The notes under the pieces are model-generated. The model worked only from the letters and a program-made list of their open reading frames with translations, was not told the DNA's origin and did no database searches. Positions 15,088 through 63,380 of a stretch of DNA of 64,000 nucleotides are shown piece after piece. The DNA comes from Heteronotia binoei (Eukaryota). A program made the translations under genes and the position numbers. The stretch is from contig NC_083227.1 of NCBI RefSeq assembly GCF_032191835.1, positions 167,214,001 to 167,278,000 on the forward strand. Reading direction: 5' to 3'. How positions within the stretch are numbered: the first letter of the stretch is position 1; every line of letters begins with the position of its first letter.

Positions 15088-18000
15088 GTAAGCAGTGGGC
15101 AGTTAGTCCTTTGACTTCAGGGCATCAGGAATTGTGCAGATCACGTACAATATTCCTTCAGCTGCTTATTATTGTATAACTAATACATTTGATATTCGAT
15201 GGTATAGTTCTGCAGAGCTTCAGACAATCCGTCTTTAAACACTCTGTGTAAAGAGTCGCAATTAGAAATAAAGACTTTTGTGCCAGAGTACATCTCTTTT
15301 CTTCTAGATAAGGCCTTCCTTCCGTAGCTCACTCAGGAGGGCAAACCCCCCCCCAGAAGATCCTCACCTCCCTGAAGAAAGGGTTCATGTCTTGTCGGGT
15401 GGGGGAAGAATACTTTGGCAAACAGTTTTTTCAAAGTAAGAAGATACTGTGCTGTCAGCATTTGATGGTGTACAGTTGTCTTTGCTTAACTCGGTTAAAT
15501 GTCTAGAAGATGCTAGAGCATTTATTTATTTGATTTATATCCCGCCCTCCCAGCCGAAGCAGGCTCAGGGCAGCTCACAGCATAAAAACCACAACAAACA
15601 ATTTAAAATCGATACATATTATAAAAATTACACGTTCACTAGTTAAAACAATCAGAAATATTGTATTAGTATGTATTAGTGCTGAAGAAACAGGTCTACT
15701 TGATGTCAAATCCTGCTTTTTATTATCTTCATTTTGTATAGAAATTGTGTCTCTGCTTCAACTGGGTCGATCTTGCCATGCTGATCCATTGCTCGATAAC
15801 TTCATGGTTGGACGATTGTACTGCACTGTACACGGGGCTATTCGCAAGACAGTTAAAAATTGAGCTGATATAAAGTACAGCAGCTGGTTTGTGATTCTGA
15901 GCTAGCTGCACTTCACCTATTCTGAACATTCTTCAGTGTCTGTCTGCTGGCTTCTGTGTTCAGTTCAAGATGCTGGTTTTTACCTTTGTGGGCCCAAGGC
16001 CATAAAAGCCTTTATATCTTCAGGACTGCTGCTCCCAATGAGCTCCTTTGCGGCAGCTCTGTTTTGTGGATCAAAGCTTGCTGAGAATGCCATCACGTGG
16101 ATAAGTTAAAAATGCTGCTGCCTGGTTTAGGAGTTGTTGCAGAACAGACTTGCTTTGGCCTGCAGGCCCTATTCTACCCTGTCCTCCTAGCTTTTTCTCA
16201 ACACCTGGAGAGGCTTTTCTCTTTCTTTCCAGTAACTCGCCTTACCCTTGTAGGAACTACCTGCTGGGAGGGTCGGGACTCCCAGCTTCCCTTCCAAGTT
16301 CTGAGGCCTTGCCTCTGTGTCTCCTGCTGCCCAGTGCCTGGTCACCTTGTGCACCCCTGGAAGAATAGCTGCTTGCCGATTGCCAGCCTTCACCTCAGTG
16401 CTCCTTTTAAAACAGTGTGTTCGAGACAGTGGATGTCTATGTGGTACAGAGAACCACTGCTTGCATTCAAAAGTTATAAAGTATTTATTAAAAAGAAAAT
16501 GTTTACAAGCATACTGTTAGCACAGCACCAGATTGAGCGAGGGATTCTAAAAGAAATGGGTAAAATGCAAATCCCCTGTCTGACTGCCATCTGTCTCTCT
16601 CTCTATGTGTATACACACACACGTGCTGTAAATAAAGATCTGTGTACCCAAATGGGCCCATAGGAAAGAAGTACATCATGGGGGTATTTGGAATCCTCGA
16701 TTGGCTCTGGTGTCAGAATTAGCTATACATACCAAAACAGGAAAGATTGCAGAGGACAAAACAGTGCTGTGTAGCAACACAGACTTAGCATGCATGACAC
16801 CCCAGGTTCAAGTTCTTTGTGGCTCTAGTTACAAGGCAGCCCTGAAAGGAAACCCAAAAGTAGCTGAGATTGTGCACTAAGACGCAATCACTGAGGAAAG
16901 TCTCCTCATATCAATTGTCTGTCTCAGACTTCAACTACTTGGCTTAGCTTCTTATGTAAACATTTATTTGCTGTGTTCAACAAGATCTCGACCATTGCTT
17001 GCTGCCGTTCATCCCAGCACCCCTTGTGGGGCTTGTACTGACATGAGTTGCTATCTTAAGCGTTTCACATCCTGGCTATAGGATGGCATTCCTAGGTAGC
17101 AGTCCTAAGCAGAAGTAAATCTCATTTTATTCAGTGGGACTTACTCCAAGGAAAGTGTTTTTACGATTGCAGCCTTGATTGTTTTTTTGAAAAGCACCTA
17201 AGGTAAAAAATGGCCGGGTCTTAGTAAAATCAAATGTTCAAACATAACTATTACGGTGTTTGGATGAATCCTTTCTTAAGGATTACCTGCAGTAACTACC
17301 ACTGTTCTCACCTCCATAGAGGTGAGAATTAAAATTGTGCTAAGGGCGCTACAAAACTGCTGTATCCAGTTTAATATCAAAAGTTTTCCGAAATGGTGAC
17401 ATCCTGCGACCACACGTAATAAAAAAGCATTCAGCTCCAGCTCTTCTTTATTTAAAGTAAAATTCCAGAAAAATGCCTTTTGCATCTTAAACATCACAGA
17501 TAATTAAAACAAGCAGGGGACCACATGGACGTGGGGCGAGGGTCTCATTTCCCCCTCCCCCACTATTTCTTCATTCCCTTTCTTGAAAACCCCCCATATC
17601 TGATCCTACTTTCCTACCTCTTTCCACCCACCAGTGAACTGACTTTTATATCACCCCCACGCACACCTGTCTTCTGCCCCCCTCTACTGTTGGGAGCCTC
17701 TCCCTGGGAAATGTCTGGCCAAGCTCCTGCAGCTGGGCCAGGCCGAGTTGCTTGATGGGGAACCTGCAAGGACTTGCAATTGGCACCTCAGTTTCCCCTC
17801 TGTCTCCCTCTCAATGCTGTTTCTTCTTCCTCTTAGCCAGGCAGTTCCCATATCCTCACCATTCAGTTTCCTTCTCTCTTCCCCCCTCACTGACCAGTCT
17901 ACACTTTCTTTCGCCCCTCCATCTTCAGCAGTATTTATTTACGACATTTATACCTGTCTTTCTCCTCATGATGGACCAAAGACAGCTTCCATAACCCCTT

Positions 18001-44412: not shown

Positions 44413-44892
44413 TCAGAAGGCCACGACGGCGCGCACCACGATGCTCAGCACCCCGTCGCCCCGCCTGCAGCTCGCCCGCGCCGCCTCCTCGCCCGAGAAG
44501 CGGCGCTGCAAGACCCGCGCCAAGCCCGGGAAAGGCCCCTCCTGGCGCTGCGGCTGCCGCTCCTCCTCCTCCTCCAGCTTGGCTCTCTTGCTGGGCGCCG
44601 CGCCGGCTTCGGCGGCGCCCAGGCTGCTGCTGCGGCGCTTGCGGCTCGGCTTGGCGGCCGGGCTCCAGCTAGGCTGCGCGTCCATGGGCTCCGGGCTGGC
44701 GGGGGCTCCTTCTCCGGCGTCTCCCTCCTCCCCCTCCAGCTTGGCGGCCAGGTAGAGGTCGCGGGCGTTGCGCATGACGAGCGAGAGCTGCAAGCTGCGG
44801 TGCAGCCGGAGGCCGCCGCGCTGCATGCGCGAGTGGTACATCTTCCACACCGACATGGTCATGATGCGCTGCGCCTCCTTCTGCACCTCCAT
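44413..44892 (-). CDS. IER2: Immediate early response 2, intronless, 159 aa
   Basis: N-terminus MEVQKEAQRIMTMSVWKMYHSRMQRGGLRLHRSLQLSLVMRNAR, SRKRRSSSL NLS-like segment, GLARVLQRRFSG and C-terminal VRAVVAF match human IER2; lies in a CpG island. Confidence 0.97.
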   Translation of the reverse strand: MEVQKEAQRIMTMSVWKMYHSRMQRGGLRLHRSLQLSLVMRNARDLYLAAKLEGEEGDAGEGAPASPEPMDAQPSWSPAAKPSRKRRSSSLGAAEAGAAPSKRAKLEEEEERQPQRQEGPFPGLARVLQRRFSGEEAARASCRRGDGVLSIVVRAVVAF

Positions 44893-52644: not shown

Positions 52645-53139
52645 TAGGGTTGCCAAGTCCAATTCAAGAAATATATGGGGACTTTGGGGGTGGAGCCAGG
52701 AGACTTTGGGGGTGGAGCCAGGGACAAGGGTGTGACAAGCACAAGGGAGTTCTGGCCATCACATTTCAAGGGACTGAACACCTTTTAAATGCCTTCCTTC
52801 CATAGGAAATAATGAAGGATAGGGGCACCTTCTTTGGGGGCACATAGAATTGGACCCCCTGGTCCAATCTTTCTGAAACTTGGAGGGTATTTTGGGGAGA
52901 GGTACCAAATGCTACGCTGCAAATTTGGGGCCTCTACCTTAAAAAACAACCCCCCCAGAGCCCCAGATACCAGCAGATCCATCTCCATTATTTTCCATGG
53001 GAATAAATCTCCCTAGGGAATAAAAGAGTTCCCAGCAGATATTTCCCTCCCCTCCCCCCGCTTTCTGATGGCCCTGAAGCGGGGGGAGGGCCTCCAAACT
53101 GGGGGATCCCCTGCCCCCACCTGGGGATTGGCAACCCTA
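52645..53139 (-). mobile_element. hAT-type MITE, same family, opposite orientation, perfect 8-bp TSD
   Basis: TIRs tagggttgccaa / ttggcaacccta; TSD agcagtca at 52637-52644 and 53140-53147. Confidence 0.92.
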
Positions 53140-53150
53140 AGCAGTCAGCA

Positions 53151-53185
53151 GGGTCTCTGCAAGACCCATTCTTCGTGATGCCCCT
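53151..53185 (+). pseudogene. STX10: STX10 exon 1 remnant
   Basis: GGG TCT CTG CAA GAC CCA TTC TTC GTG ATG = (G)SLQDPFFVM versus human MSLEDPFFVV; no ATG at the start position and no GT donor at the expected position. Confidence 0.7.
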
Positions 53186-53301
53186 CTCCCCAGCACGGCA
53201 CAGCACAGCGCAGCCCTTGGGCGGCTAGTGGGGATTTCAGCCATAGCAAGTAGACCAGCACCACATTGTTGGAAGATATGAGTCATCCTGAAATCTCCAG
53301 G

Positions 53302-54758
53302 CTCAGCTGCTCCGGAAGCCGTCTGGTTCCCCCCTAGAGAAGTTGTGTCCATTTTAAAAATTCTTCAGAAACTCCTTGGAACACATTTGTAACGCAGGCT
53401 TTGGTTTTCTTTCGATCTAGAAGCTGGCCCTGAACTTTAGGTGCCAAACTTCAGAGTTTTTGTATTTGAATGACCATATTTTCTAATCATTGCTACCACA
53501 AAATCTCTTCACAGTTTCTTGTCATTTTAAACTATGGCAGAAGTCTCAGCTGCTCCGGAAGCCGTCTAGTTCCCCCCTAGAGAAGTTGTGTCCATTTTAA
53601 AAATTCTTCAGAAACTCCTTGGAACACATTTGTAACGCAGGCTTTGGTTTTCTTTCGATCTAGAAGCTGGCCCTGAACTTTAGGTGCCAAACTTCAGAGT
53701 TTTTGTATTTTAATGACCGTATTTTCTAATCATTGCTACCACAAAATCTCTTCACAGTTTCTTGTCATTTTAAACTATGGCAGAAGTCTCAGCTGCTCCG
53801 GAAGCCGTCTAGTTCCCCCCTAGAGAAGTTGTGTCCATTTTAAAAATTCTTCAGAAACTCCTTGGAACACATTTGTAACGCGGGCTTTGGTTTTCTTTCG
53901 ATCTAGAAGCTGGCCCTGAACTTTAGGTGCCAAACTTCAGAGTTTTTGTATTTTAATGACCATATTTTCTAATCATTGCTACCACAAAATCTCTTCACAG
54001 TTTCTTGTCATTTTAAACTACGGCAGAAGTCTCAGCTGCTGCGGAAGCCGTCTAGTTCCCCCCTAGAGAAGTTGTGTCCATTTTAACAATTCTTCAGAAA
54101 CTCCTTGGAACAAATTTGTAACGCAGGCTTTGGTTTTCTTTCGATCTAGAAGCTGGCCCTGAACTTTAGGTGCCAAACTTCAGAGTTTTTGTATTTTAAT
54201 GACCGTATTTTCTAATCATTGCTACCACAAAATCTCTTCACAGTTTCTTGTCATTTTAAACTATGGCAGAAGTCTCAGCTGCTCCGGAAGCCGTCTAGTT
54301 CCCCCCTAGAGAAGTTGTGTCCATTTTAACAATTCTTCAGAAACTCCTTGGAACAAATTTGTAACACAGGCTTTGGTTTTCTTTCGATCTAGAAGCTGGC
54401 CCTGAACTTTAGGTGCCAAACTTCAGAGTTTTGTATTTTAATGACCATATTTTCTAATCATTGCTACCACAAAATCTCTTCACAGTTTCTTGTCATTTTA
54501 AACTATGGCAGAAGTCTCAGCTGCTCCAGAAGCCGTCTAGTTCCCCCCTAGAGAAGTTGTGTCCATTTTAAAAATTCTTCAGAAACTCCTTGGAACAAAT
54601 TTGTAACACAGGCTTTGATTTTCTTTCGATCTAGAAGCTGGCCCTGAACTTTAGGTGCCAAACTTCAGAGTTTTTGTATTTTAATGACCGTATTTTCTAA
54701 TCATTGCTACCACAAAATCTCTTCACAGTTTCTTGTCATTTTAAACTGTGGCAGAAGT
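53302..54758. repeat. 243-bp minisatellite, 6 copies
   Basis: ctcagctgc starts at 53302, 53545, 53788, 54031, 54274 and 54516; units nearly identical; the ORF track shows no ORF across the array. Confidence 0.97.
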
Positions 54759-55989
54759 GTTGTACTATGTGTAGCTGCAACTGTGGTTGGTTGCCGTCAC
54801 CATAACCTCCCCCTTGTAACCACTACAACAAAAAACTAACCTCTAATCTAATCTGCCCCCAATTCCTCATAATTCCAGTGTTGCTTTGAAAATCTCAGTT
54901 TAAATGAATACTGGAGGCAGTACAGAAAGCATCTGGTTAAGAAATGAAATTATCCACCACTACTTAATTTTTATTTATTTTTGCGCATTTATAGTCTGCC
55001 CTTTCCCAGGATGGGCTGTGGGCGGATTACAACACAATAAAAGTTAAAATTGAACAGTAAAACGATTAAAAAATTAAACAGTTAAAACCATTAAATAAAA
55101 TGAAATAAGGCGGCGTCAACAGTGTAAACATCATTCACAGATTGAGAGACAGGCGTAATGGTGTCAATTTAAATTTACATGCAAAGCGGCAATGACAAGT
55201 ACTTAATGCATGTTCGTTTTGGGGTCATACAAGAAAACATATTGATGCAAAATTATAAACAAGGTTGTATTTCCACTGAGATTGCTGAAAGACATGGCAA
55301 TAAAGTTGTTCCTGAAAATACCAGCTGCCACAAGTTTCTAGATGACCCAGTGCCTAGGATTTGTCAAAGCCTGTCGTATGGCACAGGGGGCATCCATGGC
55401 ATCAAAAAAACCAGGGTAACACAATGTATACATCACGCTGTACAAAGCACTTTTTTAAGGTTGCCAGACACCCTTAAAGGACTTAATATTGGGATAACGT
55501 CGTCCATGAGAAGTTATGGACCCAGTGTGGCTATGCTTTTTGTGAAAGCTTTAATTGTCCATCAGAACAAATTTGGTAAGTGCTGCCTGTGCTTTCCAAA
55601 CTAGGTGTCTTTGTTTGTTTGCCATTGCTACTCTGAAAACAAACTGATTTTATTTATTTACTTATTTTATTCGATTTATATCCCGCCCTCCCTGCCAGAG
55701 CAGGCTCATTCAGTAGTCCAGTAGACTAGCTTATCCATTTAACAGTGGAATCATAAGGGACTGGAACGACCATTTGGAAGTAGTGGCTTCCTTTCCAACT
55801 TTTATAGTGAACTGGGAATAAGACCCAATGTTGAAATAAATACAATAGGCTCTAGAAGGAAGCTCTAGATGAGTGCCCTGGACTTGGGCACTCCGCGTCT
55901 ATTTGCTGTGAAGCTCAGCATTCCTTTTGTCTGCGGTGCGTTGTTGCCACCTTTTCCTGTCATATTCGGCCTTTTGTTCAAAGGATTTC

Positions 55990-56585
55990 TGGTCTTTTGA
56001 AAGATACCAAGGACTTCATAAATAAAATCAAGAATGTCCACATACCTACAGAAAGTCTCATAGTGACACTAGATGTGGTATCGTTATACATTATCATTCC
56101 TCACAAGGAGGGAAGGTTATGCCTCCAGGACACATTGGGAAAAAAGAACAGAAAAAAACCCACCCTCTTTCTTTTTGATGGAACTTATAGATCTTATTTT
56201 GGAAAAGTTATTTTAGGTTTCAGGAAGATTTTTTTCTCCAGATAAAAGGCATTTTGATGGGCAGTGCGGTGGCGCCTAGCCTGGCCAATATTTTTATGGC
56301 CAGGTTAGAGGAACAGTACATTCGTAATTTGGCCACTAATCCCTTTTATGGAAATATATCTTTGTATTTTTGGTTTATAGATGATATTTTTCTTGTATAT
56401 AGTAATTTAGTGAATGTACAGGAATTCTTTGATTGGCTGAATACTATTCATTTATCAATTAAGTTTACCGGAACAGCTATGAGACACAGTTTGAATTATC
56501 TTGACACTTTTGTTTTTCGGACGGGAGAGGATAGGCTGGCAGTGAGACCATACACTAAGACAACAGACAGGAATTCATATTCACG
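55990..56585 (+). mobile_element. Penelope-like element reverse transcriptase fragment
   Basis: KDTKDFINKI, TLDVVSLY..IPH, MGSAVAPSLANIFM, FIDDIF, KFT, YLD, YTKTTDRNSY; frameshifted. Confidence 0.85.
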
Positions 56586-57140
56586 ATTTACAAGGCTGTG
56601 TTTTCTCCTTTCCTGGACCCCTTTTATCTTGTTACAGCATTTTGAACATTGTGGTCTATGCTTTTAACCTAATTTGCTACCACAATAAACTTCCTGTTTT
56701 ACAGAGCGAGAGCAAACAGTGAAGACTCAGAAGGTAATTTGTGTCAGAATTAAGATCTCACAGGTTCAGTACTCTCACCACTAGACCTGGAGCTAGTTCT
56801 GCTTATCTCTTTCACACACACTACTTTTAATGCACTTTAGCAATTGTCTGCAAATTGATTTTGCCATTTTACAGAGTAAAATCCAGTTGCACGTGGGATT
56901 GGAAGTGCATTATTCAGCGTGTGTGGAAGCGTGTGTGATTCCTATCCTCAGTGCATACCTAAACTGAGAAAAGAAGCAATAGAGAATCCCAAGTCCGTGA
57001 GCATTGGATCTTATGGACTATAGCCAGTATATCCAGATGTATTGGTAATGCACACTGCACGTTTACTCAGGAGTGAATCCTACTGAACACAGTTTGATCT
57101 GGGCAAGTGTGCATAGGATTACACTGCTAGGGTTTTTTAA

Positions 57141-57419
57141 TGAAGAAGAAGAAGATATTGGATTTCTATCCCGCCCTCCACTCCGAAGAGTCTCAGAGCG
57201 GCTCACAATCTCCTTTACCTTCCTCCCCCACAACAGACACCCTGTGAGGTGGGTGGGGCTGGAGAGGGCTCTCACAGCAGCTGCCCTTTCAAGGACAACC
57301 TCTGCCAGAGCTATGGCTGACCCAAGGCCATTTCAGCAGGTGCAAGTGGAGGAGTGGGGAATCAAACCCGGTTCTCCCAGATAAGAGTCCGCACACTTAG
57401 CCACTACACCAAACTGGCT
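57141..57419 (-). mobile_element. tRNA-head SINE (second family)
   Basis: Same sequence as 31085-31365. Confidence 0.8.
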
Positions 57420-57784
57420 CTTAACTGGAGCCTTAACTGGAGCCTTACCTCATTCACATAATGTGTTTTGAATGCCTAGAACGTGGTAAGCAGCAATGAA
57501 TGGAAGATGTTCACAGTACATTTCCCTAACTGCTCAGTACTAAGTAACCAGTGTACATACCTGGCACTGGTCAGAGGGATTTGGCTTCAAGGTAGGCTTG
57601 AGAAAGCACTTTTTAGTTTAATTAGAAGTTTGCCACGAAACATGTTATCTAATTGTTTATGCCATTGCTACTGAACACTCCCATAATTCCTACTGGAGTA
57701 GATCATAACATGAGAGAATGTTGCTCAACATCAAATTGTTCTTATTGCTGGGGTGTGTGCGATTAATTTATTGTTTATTTTTAT

Positions 57785-58440
57785 CCTCTTTTTCACATAT
57801 TAAAGCTTTATTGTAAATTCAAAGATACAATTCTTTGTTAGTAATTTCTGTCTTGTATACATAGTCAACCATAGCAAAATAAAACATGTCTTTACAACAT
57901 AGCTGGTTACTTAGCTTAATTCAACCATATAACAGTTGTTTTACCATTAAATCAGTATATTACACTTACTGTGTCAAGAAAAGCTGCATAATTGTCATGT
58001 GATGCCAAGCTTTCAAGGAAGGGAAACCAAATAGTTTCGAAAAGGGAATTGTGACAAGCAGAGTCTGGATTTGAATTCGAGTCCTTTGATTTGTCTAATA
58101 TACAGAATCCCTGTAGAGTGGTGAACCAGTTTGCTATTGTTAATGGTTAAGGGTTTTCCATGAGGAGGCTATGAGAAACCTGGCTGCTGCACAGAAATAT
58201 TTCAATAGAGGTATTTTGGACATTTTGACAGGATAGAAAGACCGTAAGTTTAATAGAAATATTTCTGGTCGCAAGGGGATGCGAATATTCAAACAAACAT
58301 TCCTTTTTGGGCAGTGCTGCATGGCAATGAATACAATAATCAGAAATTGTATAAATAATAAAATAACAGCATTATTTTTTTTTTGTTTAGGGAAATTCAT
58401 CATCAACATTAAGGATTCTGGAAACTATCCACCTTCAAGA
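57785..58440 (-). mobile_element. L1/Tx1-like LINE 3' fragment
   Basis: RPEIFLLNL and AAARFLIASSWK resemble L1 ORF2 C-termini; AT-rich 3' end with minus-strand AATAAA. Confidence 0.5.
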
Positions 58441-58579
58441 TCACCATCCTCCGGTTCTACAGTTCTCTATCCAGCATAGTGTTTCATTGGCACCTTCCAA
58501 AGCAGCCATTTTCTCCAGGTGAACCAATGTCTGTCACATGGTGATAAACTGTAATAGTGGCAGATCTCCAGCCACCCTG

Positions 58580-60960
58580 TTATTTATTATTTATTTATTA
58601 TTTATTACGTTCCATTTCTATCCCACCCTCTTTGCAAGCGGACTCAGGGCGGCTAGCAATCAATAGTATAATACAATTTTAAAAACCAGTAAAATACAGT
58701 TTAAAACATTTTTAAAAACATTTTGTGGGGCTGTACAATTTTTGGTATGGCGGGATCTTTCTTCTTGCTGTTAGTGTAACTTCTCAGCGAAGTGAGGTGG
58801 CAGTTCTTCCCGGTTAGGTGTTGAAGGCCTGCCAAAACAGTTCAGTTTTGCAGAACCTGTGGAATTGAGAAAGGTCCCGTAGGGTCCTTATGGCCTCCGG
58901 GAAGTATTCCACATTTCTGGAGCTGCCACCGAGAAGGCCCTAGCCCGTGTGGAACAGAGCCTGGCTTCCTTTGGTCCGGGGATGGACAAAAGGTTTTGTG
59001 TCCCTGAATGCAATGTTCTCCAGGGAACGTGGAGAAATGCAGTCCCGTAGATAGGCAGGGCCACCCTCCATAAAGGGCTTTAAAGGTCAAAACCAACACC
59101 TTGAAATGGACTTGGAACACAATAGGTAGCCAGTGCAGTTCTTTCAGCACTGGCCAAATGTGCTCCCATCTAGGGAGCCTCATTAACAGCCGCGCTGCAG
59201 TGTTCTGCACTAGCTGTAGTCTCTGAGTCAGGTTCAAGGGTAGCCCCATGTAGAGAGCATTACAGTGATCTATTCTTGAGGTGACTGTGGCACGGATCAC
59301 CATAGCTAAGTTGTCATGTTCCAGAAAAGGGGCCAACTGCCATACCCGCCGAAGACGGAAGAAGGCGGATTTGGTAGTGGCTGCTATCTGGGCCTCCATT
59401 GTCAAAGAGGACTCCAGGAGCACTCCCAAGCTTTTGACCTTAGGGGCCAATATCAGTGACACCCCATCAAGAGCCGGCAAAGGGATCCCCCTTCCTGGGC
59501 CACCCCGGCTCAGATGGAGAACCTCCGTCTTCGTCGGATTCAGCTTCAACCGACTCAATCTGAGCCAAGCTGCTACGGCTTGAAGAGCCAGGTCTAGATT
59601 TTCCGGGGTACAGTCAGAGTGACCACCCATCAACAGATAGAGCTGGGTGTCATCTGCATATTGGTGACATCCCAGCCCATACCTCCTGACAATCTGGGCA
59701 AGGGGGCACACGTAGATGTTAAATAACATCAGGGACAGAACTGCGCCCTGTGGCACACCACATGTAAGTAGGTGTCTTTGGGATGATTCTTCCCCTATCA
59801 CCACCCTTTGTCCCTGACCTTGGAGAAAAGAGGCCAACCACTGAAAGGCAGACCCCTGGATCCCCACGATGGCAAGGCAGCTAGACAGTAACTGATGGTC
59901 AACCGTGTCAAATGCGGCTGACAGATCTAATAATAACAGTACTAAGCTGCCCCGATCCAGATGTCGTAGGAGGTCATCCATGAGGGTGACCCAAACCGTC
60001 TCCGTCCTGTGACTTGACCAAAAGCCAGACTCTAATGGATCCAGTGTGGAAGTGTCATCCAGGAATCCCTGTAGCTGAATCGCCACCGCCCGCTCTATGA
60101 ACTTTCCCAAAAAGGGAAGGTTTGACAACGGCCGATAGTTTGCCAATACCGCCAGGTCTGCAGATGGTTTTTTCAAAAGGGGACGGACCACAGTCTCTTT
60201 AAGAGGCGTGGGAAAGATCCCTTCTACGAGGGATCTATTGACAGTAACCTGCAGTGGCTCACGTAGCGTTACCTGGCTAGCTTTTATAAGCCAGGATGGG
60301 CACGGGTCCAACCTACAGGCAGTAGGGCGTACAGCTAAAAGAATCCTGTCAACCTCCTCCAGGCTGAGTGGAGTGAAGGAATCCAGAAACAGACCGGAAG
60401 ATGTGCTCAGTGCCTTGAGTTCCTGCACTGTATCAATTGCGGTGGGGAGGTCGTGGCAGAGCTACGAGACCTTATCTGCGAAAAAACTCGCAAAAGCCTC
60501 ACAGCCAATTTCCAATTCTCTAAAGTTTGGTTTACCTTGTGGTGAAGTTGTTAGTGACTGAATTATGCTAAATAATTGGGCTGGGTGTGAGGTCGCAGAC
60601 ACAATCCAGGACACAAAATAAGCCTTCTTTGTGCCCTGGGCTACCATCTCATAGGTGTGCATAAATGACCCATAAGATGTTCTCATAGCTTCATCCCGAG
60701 TACGTCGCCACTGCCTCTCTAGTTGTCTTAGTTTCCGTTTCATCGATCGCAGCTGCGGGATATATCACAGTGCGGATCGTGAACGGGAGTGAAGAGGACG
60801 TTGAGGAGCAATCTCGTTGATGGCTATTCCAGATCTCCGCAAGCTCATCCAACGAGTCCCCAGAGGGCCAGGGATCCCACAAAGCCATTTGAAGCCACAT
60901 TGGGTCCATCTGGCTTTGCAGGCGAGCCACAACTTGCTCACTGCCTAAACCCTAGGGCAG
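58580..60960 (-). mobile_element. L2-clade LINE, long 3' fragment with RT domain
   Basis: 528-aa ORF 58842-60428: NYRPLSNLPFLGK, LLLLDLSAAFDTVDH, GVPQGAVLS, QYADDTQLY, LKLNPTKTE; 3' UTR and (ttat)n tail near 58590. Confidence 0.93.
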
Positions 60961-61214
60961 AGCTGCACCACTCATGACCCTCCAAATCAAATACAGTCCA
61001 ACAAACCACTTACAGAGGCCGGGCTCAAGAGACCGTTTATGCTGCTGCTTGTCTGAGACTGCGCTAGAAAAAAGGACAGCTTGTCAAGCAACGGGGCTGA
61101 TTGGCAGCATTCCATTAGGTGTTCACGTGTTGTGTAGACTTGAAGTGGAAAGGCAACACCTAGTCCTAGTTCCCTTGCCCCCTCATTCTGCAAGCCTCTT
61201 TTTTTGCTCCACAG

Positions 61215-61331
61215 TGAGATTCAGAAAACTCACTGGTGTCAGCACAGAGGAATTTGACTGGATGACCAATGAACTCTGCAACAGTTTGCACGACATTGAC
61301 TGGGACTTGGAGGATCTGGAGAAAGCCATTT
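61215..61331 (+). pseudogene. STX10: STX10 exon 2 remnant (117 nt; 170 nt expected), followed by U12 donor
   Basis: ccacag|T GAG ATT CAG AAA ACT (EIQKT ~ EVQKA); after a frameshifting gap reads VSTEEFDWMTNELCNSLHDIDWDLEDLEKAI ~ [29 protein letters not shown]; entry frame hits TGA; followed by ATATCCTTT. Confidence 0.88.
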
Positions 61332-61623
61332 ATATCCTTTTGTGGCTGGTACCCTATGGAAATGGGCTGGAGTTGTGGGAATTGGTCTCCTGGTATTGCA
61401 ATCGCTTCAGTTTTCTGTCTTCATTGTGTTCTGCTTGGTGCTGGAATAGCAGGGAATTGTTTGGGCACTGCTGTCTACGAAGTCCATTGCTGGAAGTGGA
61501 AGGGAAATATATACAAGAATGCTCCTGCTGTGGGAAGGGCCTCTTGGAGAACTACAGAATGTTTGTAATCTTTACCCTCAAAGCTGAATGACTCAAAGCT
61601 CTTTGCACTTTACTTATGCACAC

Positions 61624-61716
61624 ACACTGTGGAGTCAAACCCACAAGTTCGAAGTTGAGCCCTCTGAGGCAGCAGCCCGGCGTGCTTTCATCACAGAGAT
61701 GCAAGGATCGGTTAAG
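61624..61716 (+). pseudogene. STX10: STX10 exon 3 remnant (93 nt; 95 nt expected)
   Basis: TVESNP, then a 2-nt deletion, then KFEVEPSEAAARRAFITEMQGSVK|gtgagt ~ IVEANPGKF...RKVFVERMREAVQ; preceded by AC. Confidence 0.85.
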
Positions 61717-62311
61717 GTGAGTTTTCCTCAGCTCACCGTCATGACATTGAGAAAAGCACAAGTAAGTAGCTTCCAATACCAAAGTAGTTCTGTAGTACAT
61801 GGGGAGATTTGGGACTATGTACCCATATGAGGTGAGACACTTTTAGAAAGCAGAAGGGTTGTGTTATATTGAAGACATTCAAAATATATCTGTTGAAAAA
61901 CCAGAATGTGAAACTGGGATTTTTTTTGGCATCTTGGCGACAGTGTGGTTGGGAGTAAGGAATGTGGAAATCTATTCCCAAATGTGGTGAAGAAATGGAG
62001 TTAGATGGTTGAAGCTGGGATGAGGCTAAATGCTATATCAGATCTCCTTAATTTCTTATACCTGCAGGGAGACTGCAATGGTGTCTATTCTGGGGGGACT
62101 GTGTGATATTGTGGAATCACCTGTGGCTCTTCTGAGCACTGTTCCCCAGTGTGGCATTTGTCCCATGTTTCAGGCAAGTGGTAAGGTTCTTGCCTGGCAG
62201 GGCTTGTAGTTGGCAGGTGGTTCCCACCTTGAAACAGGTATTGCCAGCGGAACACTGCAAGTCTCTGTGGTGCAGGCCCCTTGCCAGGAATGGAAGTGAT
62301 TGCCGCTGTTT

Positions 62312-62910
62312 TGAAGAAGAAGAAGATGAAGAAGATATTGGATTTATATCCCGCCCTCCACTCTGAAGAGTCTCAGAGTGGCTCACAATCTCCTTTACCT
62401 TCCTCCCCCACAACAGACACCCTGTGAGGTAGATGAAGATACTGGATCTATATCCCGCCCTCCACTCCAAAGAGTCTCAGAGCGGCTCACAATCTCCTTT
62501 CCCTTCCTCCCCCACAACAGACACCCTGTGAGGTAGATGAGGATATTGGATTTATATCCCGCCCTCCACTCCAAAGAGTCTCAGAGCTGCTCACCATCTC
62601 CTTTCCCTTCCTCTCCCACAACAGACACCCTGTGAGGTAGATGAAGATATTGGATTTATATTCCTCCCTCCACTCCGAAGAGTCTCAGAGCGGCTCACAA
62701 TCTCCTTTACCTTCCTCCCCCACAACAGACACCCTGTGAGGTGGGTGGGGCTGGAGAGGGCTCTCACAGCAGCTGCCCTTTCAAGGACAACCTCTGCCAG
62801 AGCTCTGGCTGACCCAAGGCCATGCCAACAGGTGCAAGTGGAGGAGTGGGGAATCAAACCCGGTTCTCCCAGATAAGAGTCCACACACTTAACCACTACA
62901 CCAAACTGGC
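62312..62910 (-). mobile_element. tRNA-head SINE (second family) with 4x104-bp tandem of its 3' part
   Basis: Unit starts at 62331, 62435, 62539 and 62643. Confidence 0.88.
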
Positions 62911-63317
62911 TTTGGTTGACAGTAATTGCAAATAGGCTCTCCATTAACTACATTTGACTAGGACAGAGGAGACCTGGGTTCAAATTCCTGCTTGGCCACA
63001 ATGCTCACTGAGAGACATGATGCTAGTCACTCTTTAAGCCTAATCTGTCTCCAAGGGTCGTTGTCAGGATGGAATCGAAGAGTGGAAAATCATGTATGCT
63101 ACTTTGAGTTCCTTGAAGAATAGGAAGAATATAATAAAAATTTCTTGTATAGCAGTGTATTCTTGAGTTTAGGGTACAGTTTACAAAAGTGACAGGTAGG
63201 GCTTGTAATAGGTGGTTATGTGCCTTAGGAGTCCTTGGAAAAAAAAATATCCTTAATATCGTTACAGATGCACCCTTTGAGGTCACTGTCTTTATTGCTT
63301 CCTTTTCTTTACTTTAG

Positions 63318-63380
63318 GAAATATGGGACCACGTATCGAGTCCAACAACACAAGCCATTTTGGAGAAGAAAAATAGAGAG
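63318..63380 (+). pseudogene. STX10: STX10 exon 4 remnant (63 nt, frame intact)
   Basis: ctttag|EIWDHVSSPTTQAILEKKNRE|gtaaat ~ human EMKDHMVSPTAVAFLERNNRE. Confidence 0.85.

Follow-up and report, generated by a model that had tools for sequence, protein, structure and literature searches.

Together with STX16, Vti1a, and VAMP3, the Qc-SNARE STX10 acts in the return of mannose-6-phosphate receptors to the Golgi (PMC2213607). It is needed for this return in human cells and is absent in mice and rats (Ganley et al. 2008, PMC2213607). Named STX10 proteins were found in at least 15 squamates, including the geckos Eublepharis, Euleptes, Sphaerodactylus, and Paroedura. The intact gene of these geckos (e.g., Paroedura picta XP_077183385.1) lies next to IER2 and has eight exons of canonical size, a U12-type intron 2, and a 246-amino-acid open reading frame (ORF). 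Here we describe the same locus in a gekkonid-type gecko. The DNA analyzed is a stretch of 64,000 nucleotides, called the window (G000:C5:167214001-167278000), within a 2.63-Gb chromosome-scale assembly. Its STX10 exons are 70-86% identical in amino acids to those of the intact genes, but the gene has lost its ATG and three splice sites and carries two frameshifts and three in-frame indels. We read it as an old, lineage-specific, non-processed unitary pseudogene of STX10 at the orthologous locus (probability about 0.93). A unitary pseudogene had been proposed here by an earlier reading made without database searches (the sequence-only reading), which also noted the absence of STX10 in mouse, as the published work states. 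The proposal is upheld by a syntenic, intron-bearing locus, at least nine lesions, the lack of a second copy in the assembly, grouping with gecko STX10, and neutral evolution. As in mice and rats, the same gene is missing from a vertebrate lineage that retains STX6. The gecko event differs in being independent, and the gecko gene is still readable exon by exon at its syntenic site.

The loci used for comparison were those of Eublepharis (L014), Paroedura (L025), Sphaerodactylus (L026), and the skink Tiliqua (L027), with the IER2 locus of Gekko japonicus (L028). Orthologues were retrieved by an HMMER scan with exon 2 of STX6 from this genome and by two homology searches. The 30 kb downstream of the window were added for exons 5 to 8. 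Exact spliced mapping gave identical exon sizes in Eublepharis, Paroedura, Sphaerodactylus, and Tiliqua: 35, 170, 95, 63, 99, 107, 95, and 77 nt. The first four are the sizes that the sequence-only reading had expected. The exons of the window gene are 35, 117, 93, 63, 90, 116, 80, and 77 nt long.

All eight STX10 exons are recognizable, in order and with homologous introns, between IER2 and the next gene. The window is collinear with the Eublepharis STX10 locus over about 45 kb at about 70% identity, introns and intergenic DNA included. This alignment extends past IER2, through every STX10 intron, and into the following gene, which in Paroedura is a BTB/BEN gene. The remnant therefore lies in conserved synteny where relatives have a functional orthologue. 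It keeps the intron-exon structure and is not a retrocopy. The four remnants within the window had been described as collinear with STX10 exons 1 to 4, and the intact loci of three geckos and a skink agree, also in their introns. Their conceptual translation is a recognizable STX10 peptide. The exon 2 remnant matches human STX10 (PDB 4DND) with an E value of 1.8e-8 and also matches STX6 (1LVF). It matches Pfam family PF09177 with an E value of 2.2e-7, above the Pfam cut-off. Exons 3 and 4 have 71-86% amino-acid identity to gecko STX10. In a protein tree, the window translation (with X at breaks) falls within gecko STX10 with support of 100/99, beside Paroedura. It has the longest gecko branch (0.24 versus 0.05-0.13). 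STX6 forms a separate clade with support of 100/100, and the window sequence lies outside it, so the grouping with STX6 that was to be checked for did not appear.

Exon 1 lies at 53151..53185 (+) and was placed by alignment to Eublepharis, Paroedura, Sphaerodactylus, Tiliqua, and Gekko japonicus. Its start codon has changed from ATG to GGG (53151-53153). A deletion of about 16 nt spans the 3' end of the exon and the GT donor. Exon 2 lies at 61215..61331 (+) and retains the AG acceptor, but it contains 117 nt instead of 170. The net 53-nt deletion removes about 18 codons and shifts the frame, and a TGA stands at 61255-61257 in the ancestral frame. Exon 3 lies at 61624..61716 (+) and contains 93 nt instead of 95. 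It retains the GT donor and is frameshifted by a 2-nt deletion after about position 61643. Exon 4 lies at 63318..63380 (+). Its length of 63 nt and both splice sites are intact, and it has 86% amino-acid identity to Euleptes STX10.

The other four exons lie past the end of the window. Exon 5, just beyond it (C5:167278015-167278104), has a 9-nt deletion. Exon 6 (C5:167282049-167282164) has a 9-nt tandem duplication, which adds an extra Glu-Gln-Leu within the SNARE motif, and its donor has changed from GT to GG. Exon 7 (C5:167284051-167284130) has a 15-nt deletion within the SNARE motif. Exon 8 (C5:167286094-167286170) retains the stop codon, but its acceptor has changed from AG to AA. The conserved Arg-Arg that precedes the membrane anchor is also altered in this exon, through CpG transitions.

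At least nine lesions that disable or damage the gene, some of them breaking the ORF, thus affect seven of the eight exons. Every lesion site is intact in Tiliqua, Eublepharis, Sphaerodactylus, and Paroedura, and among these species the lesions are unique to the window. None of those listed is a homopolymer slip. The missing ATG and the lost exon 1 donor, both checked against orthologue DNA, had been noticed from the window sequence, as had the 53-nt shortfall of exon 2 with its in-frame TGA and the 2-nt deletion in exon 3. All of these stand. Three substitutions had been ascribed to CpG decay (T>M, R>C, and R>H). All three are present, and the clear CpG transitions among them are R>C and R>H.

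The N-terminal three-helix domain is incomplete. The remnant matches only positions 35-66 of PF09177, and exon 2 of STX6 from the same genome matches positions 4-67. No uninterrupted heptad motif is joined to a C-terminal membrane anchor. The SNARE motif has a 3-residue duplication and a 5-residue deletion, and the exon 6 donor and exon 8 acceptor are lost.

Intron 2 (61332..61623, +) was identified as a U12-type AT-AC intron in the multi-species alignment. Introns of this type have a 5' ATATCCTT and a TCCTTAAC-like branch site 10-15 nt from a 3' AC. Both ends, the 5' ATATCCTT and the 3' AC, occur in the window and in four squamates. At the branch site, three of the four squamates read CTTAAC and Paroedura reads CTTAAT. 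The window reads CTTTAC, and its branch site may be weakened. STX6 of the same genome shares the AT-AC intron 2, with the consensus branch site TTCCTTAAC. Because intron 2 is a conserved U12 AT-AC intron, the odd splice sites of exons 2 and 3 are not lesions. A lost exon 2 donor and a lost exon 3 acceptor were dropped from the list for this reason. The U12 intron 2 occurs in both STX10 and STX6 (window 61332-61623; L001 at about 1688; L004 at about 1480-1502) and is conserved among the squamates compared. Models in public protein sets that read through exon 2 ('...ETIYIL...') derive from this intron.

The former coding sequence has evolved under relaxed or neutral conditions. On a five-taxon tree, the terminal branch of the window measures 0.108 in exons and 0.105 in introns, a ratio of about 1.0. 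The corresponding values on the same tree are 0.063/0.265 for Paroedura, 0.089/0.184 for Sphaerodactylus, and 0.036/0.170 for Eublepharis, and the ratio in these other geckos is 0.21-0.48. Unique codon changes in the window are 33 nonsynonymous to 6 synonymous, versus 59:52 pooled in the other four (Fisher p = 5e-4). The 33:6 count does not differ from the neutral site ratio. Relaxed selection had been suggested from the window sequence, and both the branch ratio and the codon counts point the same way. Window-specific indels have similar densities in exons (6 in 741 bp) and introns (43 in about 4 kb aligned). CpG transitions account for 7/38 of the exon changes unique to the window versus 5/113 in the other species. 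The promoter CpG island around exon 1 (52651..53250) is decayed and contains 7 CpGs in 600 bp, with an observed/expected ratio of 0.16. The same interval contains 28-56 CpGs in five other species, with ratios of 0.59-0.99. Over essentially the whole branch since the split from the Paroedura lineage, exon drift has kept pace with that of the introns, which makes the loss old and probably fixed. Rates, codon changes, indels, and CpG loss together place the inactivation of STX10 near the base of the window's branch.

We propose that an eight-exon STX10 locus has decayed in place and that its product would no longer be a Qc-SNARE. The start codon and the exon 1 donor have been lost, the short exon 2 runs into a TGA, and exon 3 is frameshifted. 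The duplication and deletion in the SNARE motif disrupt the heptad register. Mutation has also removed the exon 6 donor and the exon 8 acceptor, which leads into the membrane anchor. The decay of the CpG island suggests that the promoter has been silenced. By analogy with mice and rats, STX6 or another SNARE may have taken over the retrieval of mannose-6-phosphate receptors from late endosomes to the Golgi.

Several points weigh against a unitary pseudogene. The sample is a single individual with a single assembly. The 9-, 9-, and 15-nt indels leave the reading frame unchanged. Use of an AC two bases further upstream, within a CACACAC run, might in principle compensate for the frameshift of exon 3, and some partial ORF could remain, lacking the start codon, the exon 6 donor, and the exon 8 acceptor. 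Four public runs over 61001-67000 covered only a repeat in intron 3 (62201-62911) and no exon. Rescue of the exon 3 frame by the upstream AC was set aside; it is possible on paper and irrelevant given the remaining lesions.

A rival reading is that STX10 is still functional, with the lesions being assembly errors or with other exons in use, such as an amplified alternative first exon. Exons 4 to 8 are internally open, and public reads cover no exon. Intron 1 contains a tandem array of a 243-bp unit in 6.0 copies that are 98% alike (53302..54758, +; Tandem Repeats Finder). This unit shares homology with the alternative first exon that Paroedura STX10 isoforms X1 and X3 use, and tblastn with residues 5-31 of P0168 matched six copies in the array. 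Gekko japonicus has one copy (15865-16091), which aligns to all copies of the window, and the array looks like a recent local amplification. Against a functional gene, the nine lesions contain no homopolymer slip and include substitutions at the ATG and two splice sites along with deletions of 53, 15, and 9 nt. The deleted part of exon 2 has no match elsewhere in the locus or genome assembly, and the exons evolve at the intron rate. The adjoining IER2 has several deletions, yet its frame stays open, which also speaks against local assembly errors. We consider a functional STX10 very improbable.

One raw-read RNA run, possibly from another species, had essentially zero depth on exons 2 to 5. 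A search for runs with exons 6 to 8 listed no public run. The intron 3 repeat (62201..62911) appeared as a high-copy interspersed repeat in the read-depth table. In RNA and DNA runs from several organisms, contigs and reads in the thousands matched it with 90-99% identity.

The use of a single assembly also leaves room for a null allele, recent or polymorphic, carried by the individual that was sequenced, rather than a fixed, ancient loss. We give this hardly any weight. At least nine independent lesions, exon and intron rates that are about equal along the entire terminal branch, the 33:6 codon count, and the loss of the CpG island need a long time under neutrality.

The search for other copies used PF09177, Euleptes STX10, and an STX6 protein as six-frame queries against the 2.63-Gb assembly. 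No second STX10 copy was found in the assembly; the searches gave only this locus and STX6 on C2. No further match to the deleted portion of exon 2 was found in the locus or the genome assembly. There is thus no functional copy elsewhere in the assembled sequence, unassembled sequence being outside the search. The sequence-only reading had asked whether an intact STX10 exists elsewhere, and the whole-assembly search with Euleptes STX10 returned only this locus and STX6. STX6 lies at G000:C2:182225355-182239724. It belongs to the same family (PF09177 plus SNARE motif) as STX10. Its matched exons are open, unlike those of the window STX10, and are 78-89% identical to sauropsid STX6. STX6 looks intact. 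A remnant derived from a decayed STX6 duplicate, or from a duplicated STX10 with the true gene elsewhere, is highly implausible. With about 60% identity between STX6 and STX10, short exons by themselves might be misassigned, but the remnant shows synteny and collinearity with STX10 in four squamates, falls inside gecko STX10 in the tree, and is the only match in the genome besides STX6 on C2.

A weak match on C15 in the STX6/STX10 search was to an intronless, STX8-like ORF. It contains 248 amino acids (L020 1480-2226, minus strand; G000:C15 around 13431568-13431855) and is 31% identical to STX6 in the SNARE region. We take it to resemble syntaxin 8, and it may be an intact STX8 retrocopy.

IER2 was used as the synteny anchor. 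Its ORF of 159 amino acids lies at 44413..44892 (-), head-to-head with STX10 exon 1. The head-to-head arrangement had been recognized from the window and is shared with Eublepharis, Paroedura, Sphaerodactylus, and Gekko japonicus. The ORF is short compared with the 249-257 amino acids of these four geckos. Several separate in-frame deletions have left little of the central low-complexity region. The conserved N terminus, the KPSRKRRSSSL motif, and the C terminus are retained.

STX10 is intact in Eublepharidae (Eublepharis), Sphaerodactylidae (Sphaerodactylus), Euleptes, and the gekkonid Paroedura. Because it is intact in these four, the loss arose within geckos. It is also independent of the rodent loss because at least 15 squamates, these four geckos among them, have intact STX10. 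The sequence-only reading had proposed an independent squamate loss. The independence stands, and the scope narrows from squamates to one lineage inside geckos.

Gekko japonicus was compared at exon 1 only, by way of the IER2 locus, with exons 2 to 8 beyond the sequence compared. Its exon 1 (KQ752119.1:958978-979730, L028, reverse-complement positions 15677-15711) starts with GTG, at the site of the ATG of other squamates, and retains the donor and the CpG island. No Gekko japonicus STX10 protein was among the best 120 homology matches listed. The gene model at its STX10 site contains 303 amino acids and has no Pfam match on record. Gekko, too, may have lost STX10 or have a decaying copy. An intergenic four-taxon tree joined the window with Paroedura (support 92) and left Gekko japonicus outside, but its branch lengths are very unequal and it was not relied on. 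We suggest tentatively, at less than even odds, that a large gekkonid clade, Gekko japonicus included, shares an ancient loss, which would be a deep convergence with murid rodents.

No report of STX10 loss in reptiles turned up in a literature search. This is otherwise an ordinary lineage-specific gene loss, of a kind already known. The locus offers a clean case on which to calibrate the detection of pseudogenes in reptile genomes; its AT-AC intron 2 in particular could be mistaken for lost splice sites. The readable lesions and the intact orthologues of sister lineages provide a comparative handle on pathway compensation. As a second independent vertebrate loss, it again shows that STX10 is dispensable when STX6 is present. 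If the loss is clade-wide, geckos would be a second natural system in which mannose-6-phosphate receptor retrieval has been rewired without STX10.

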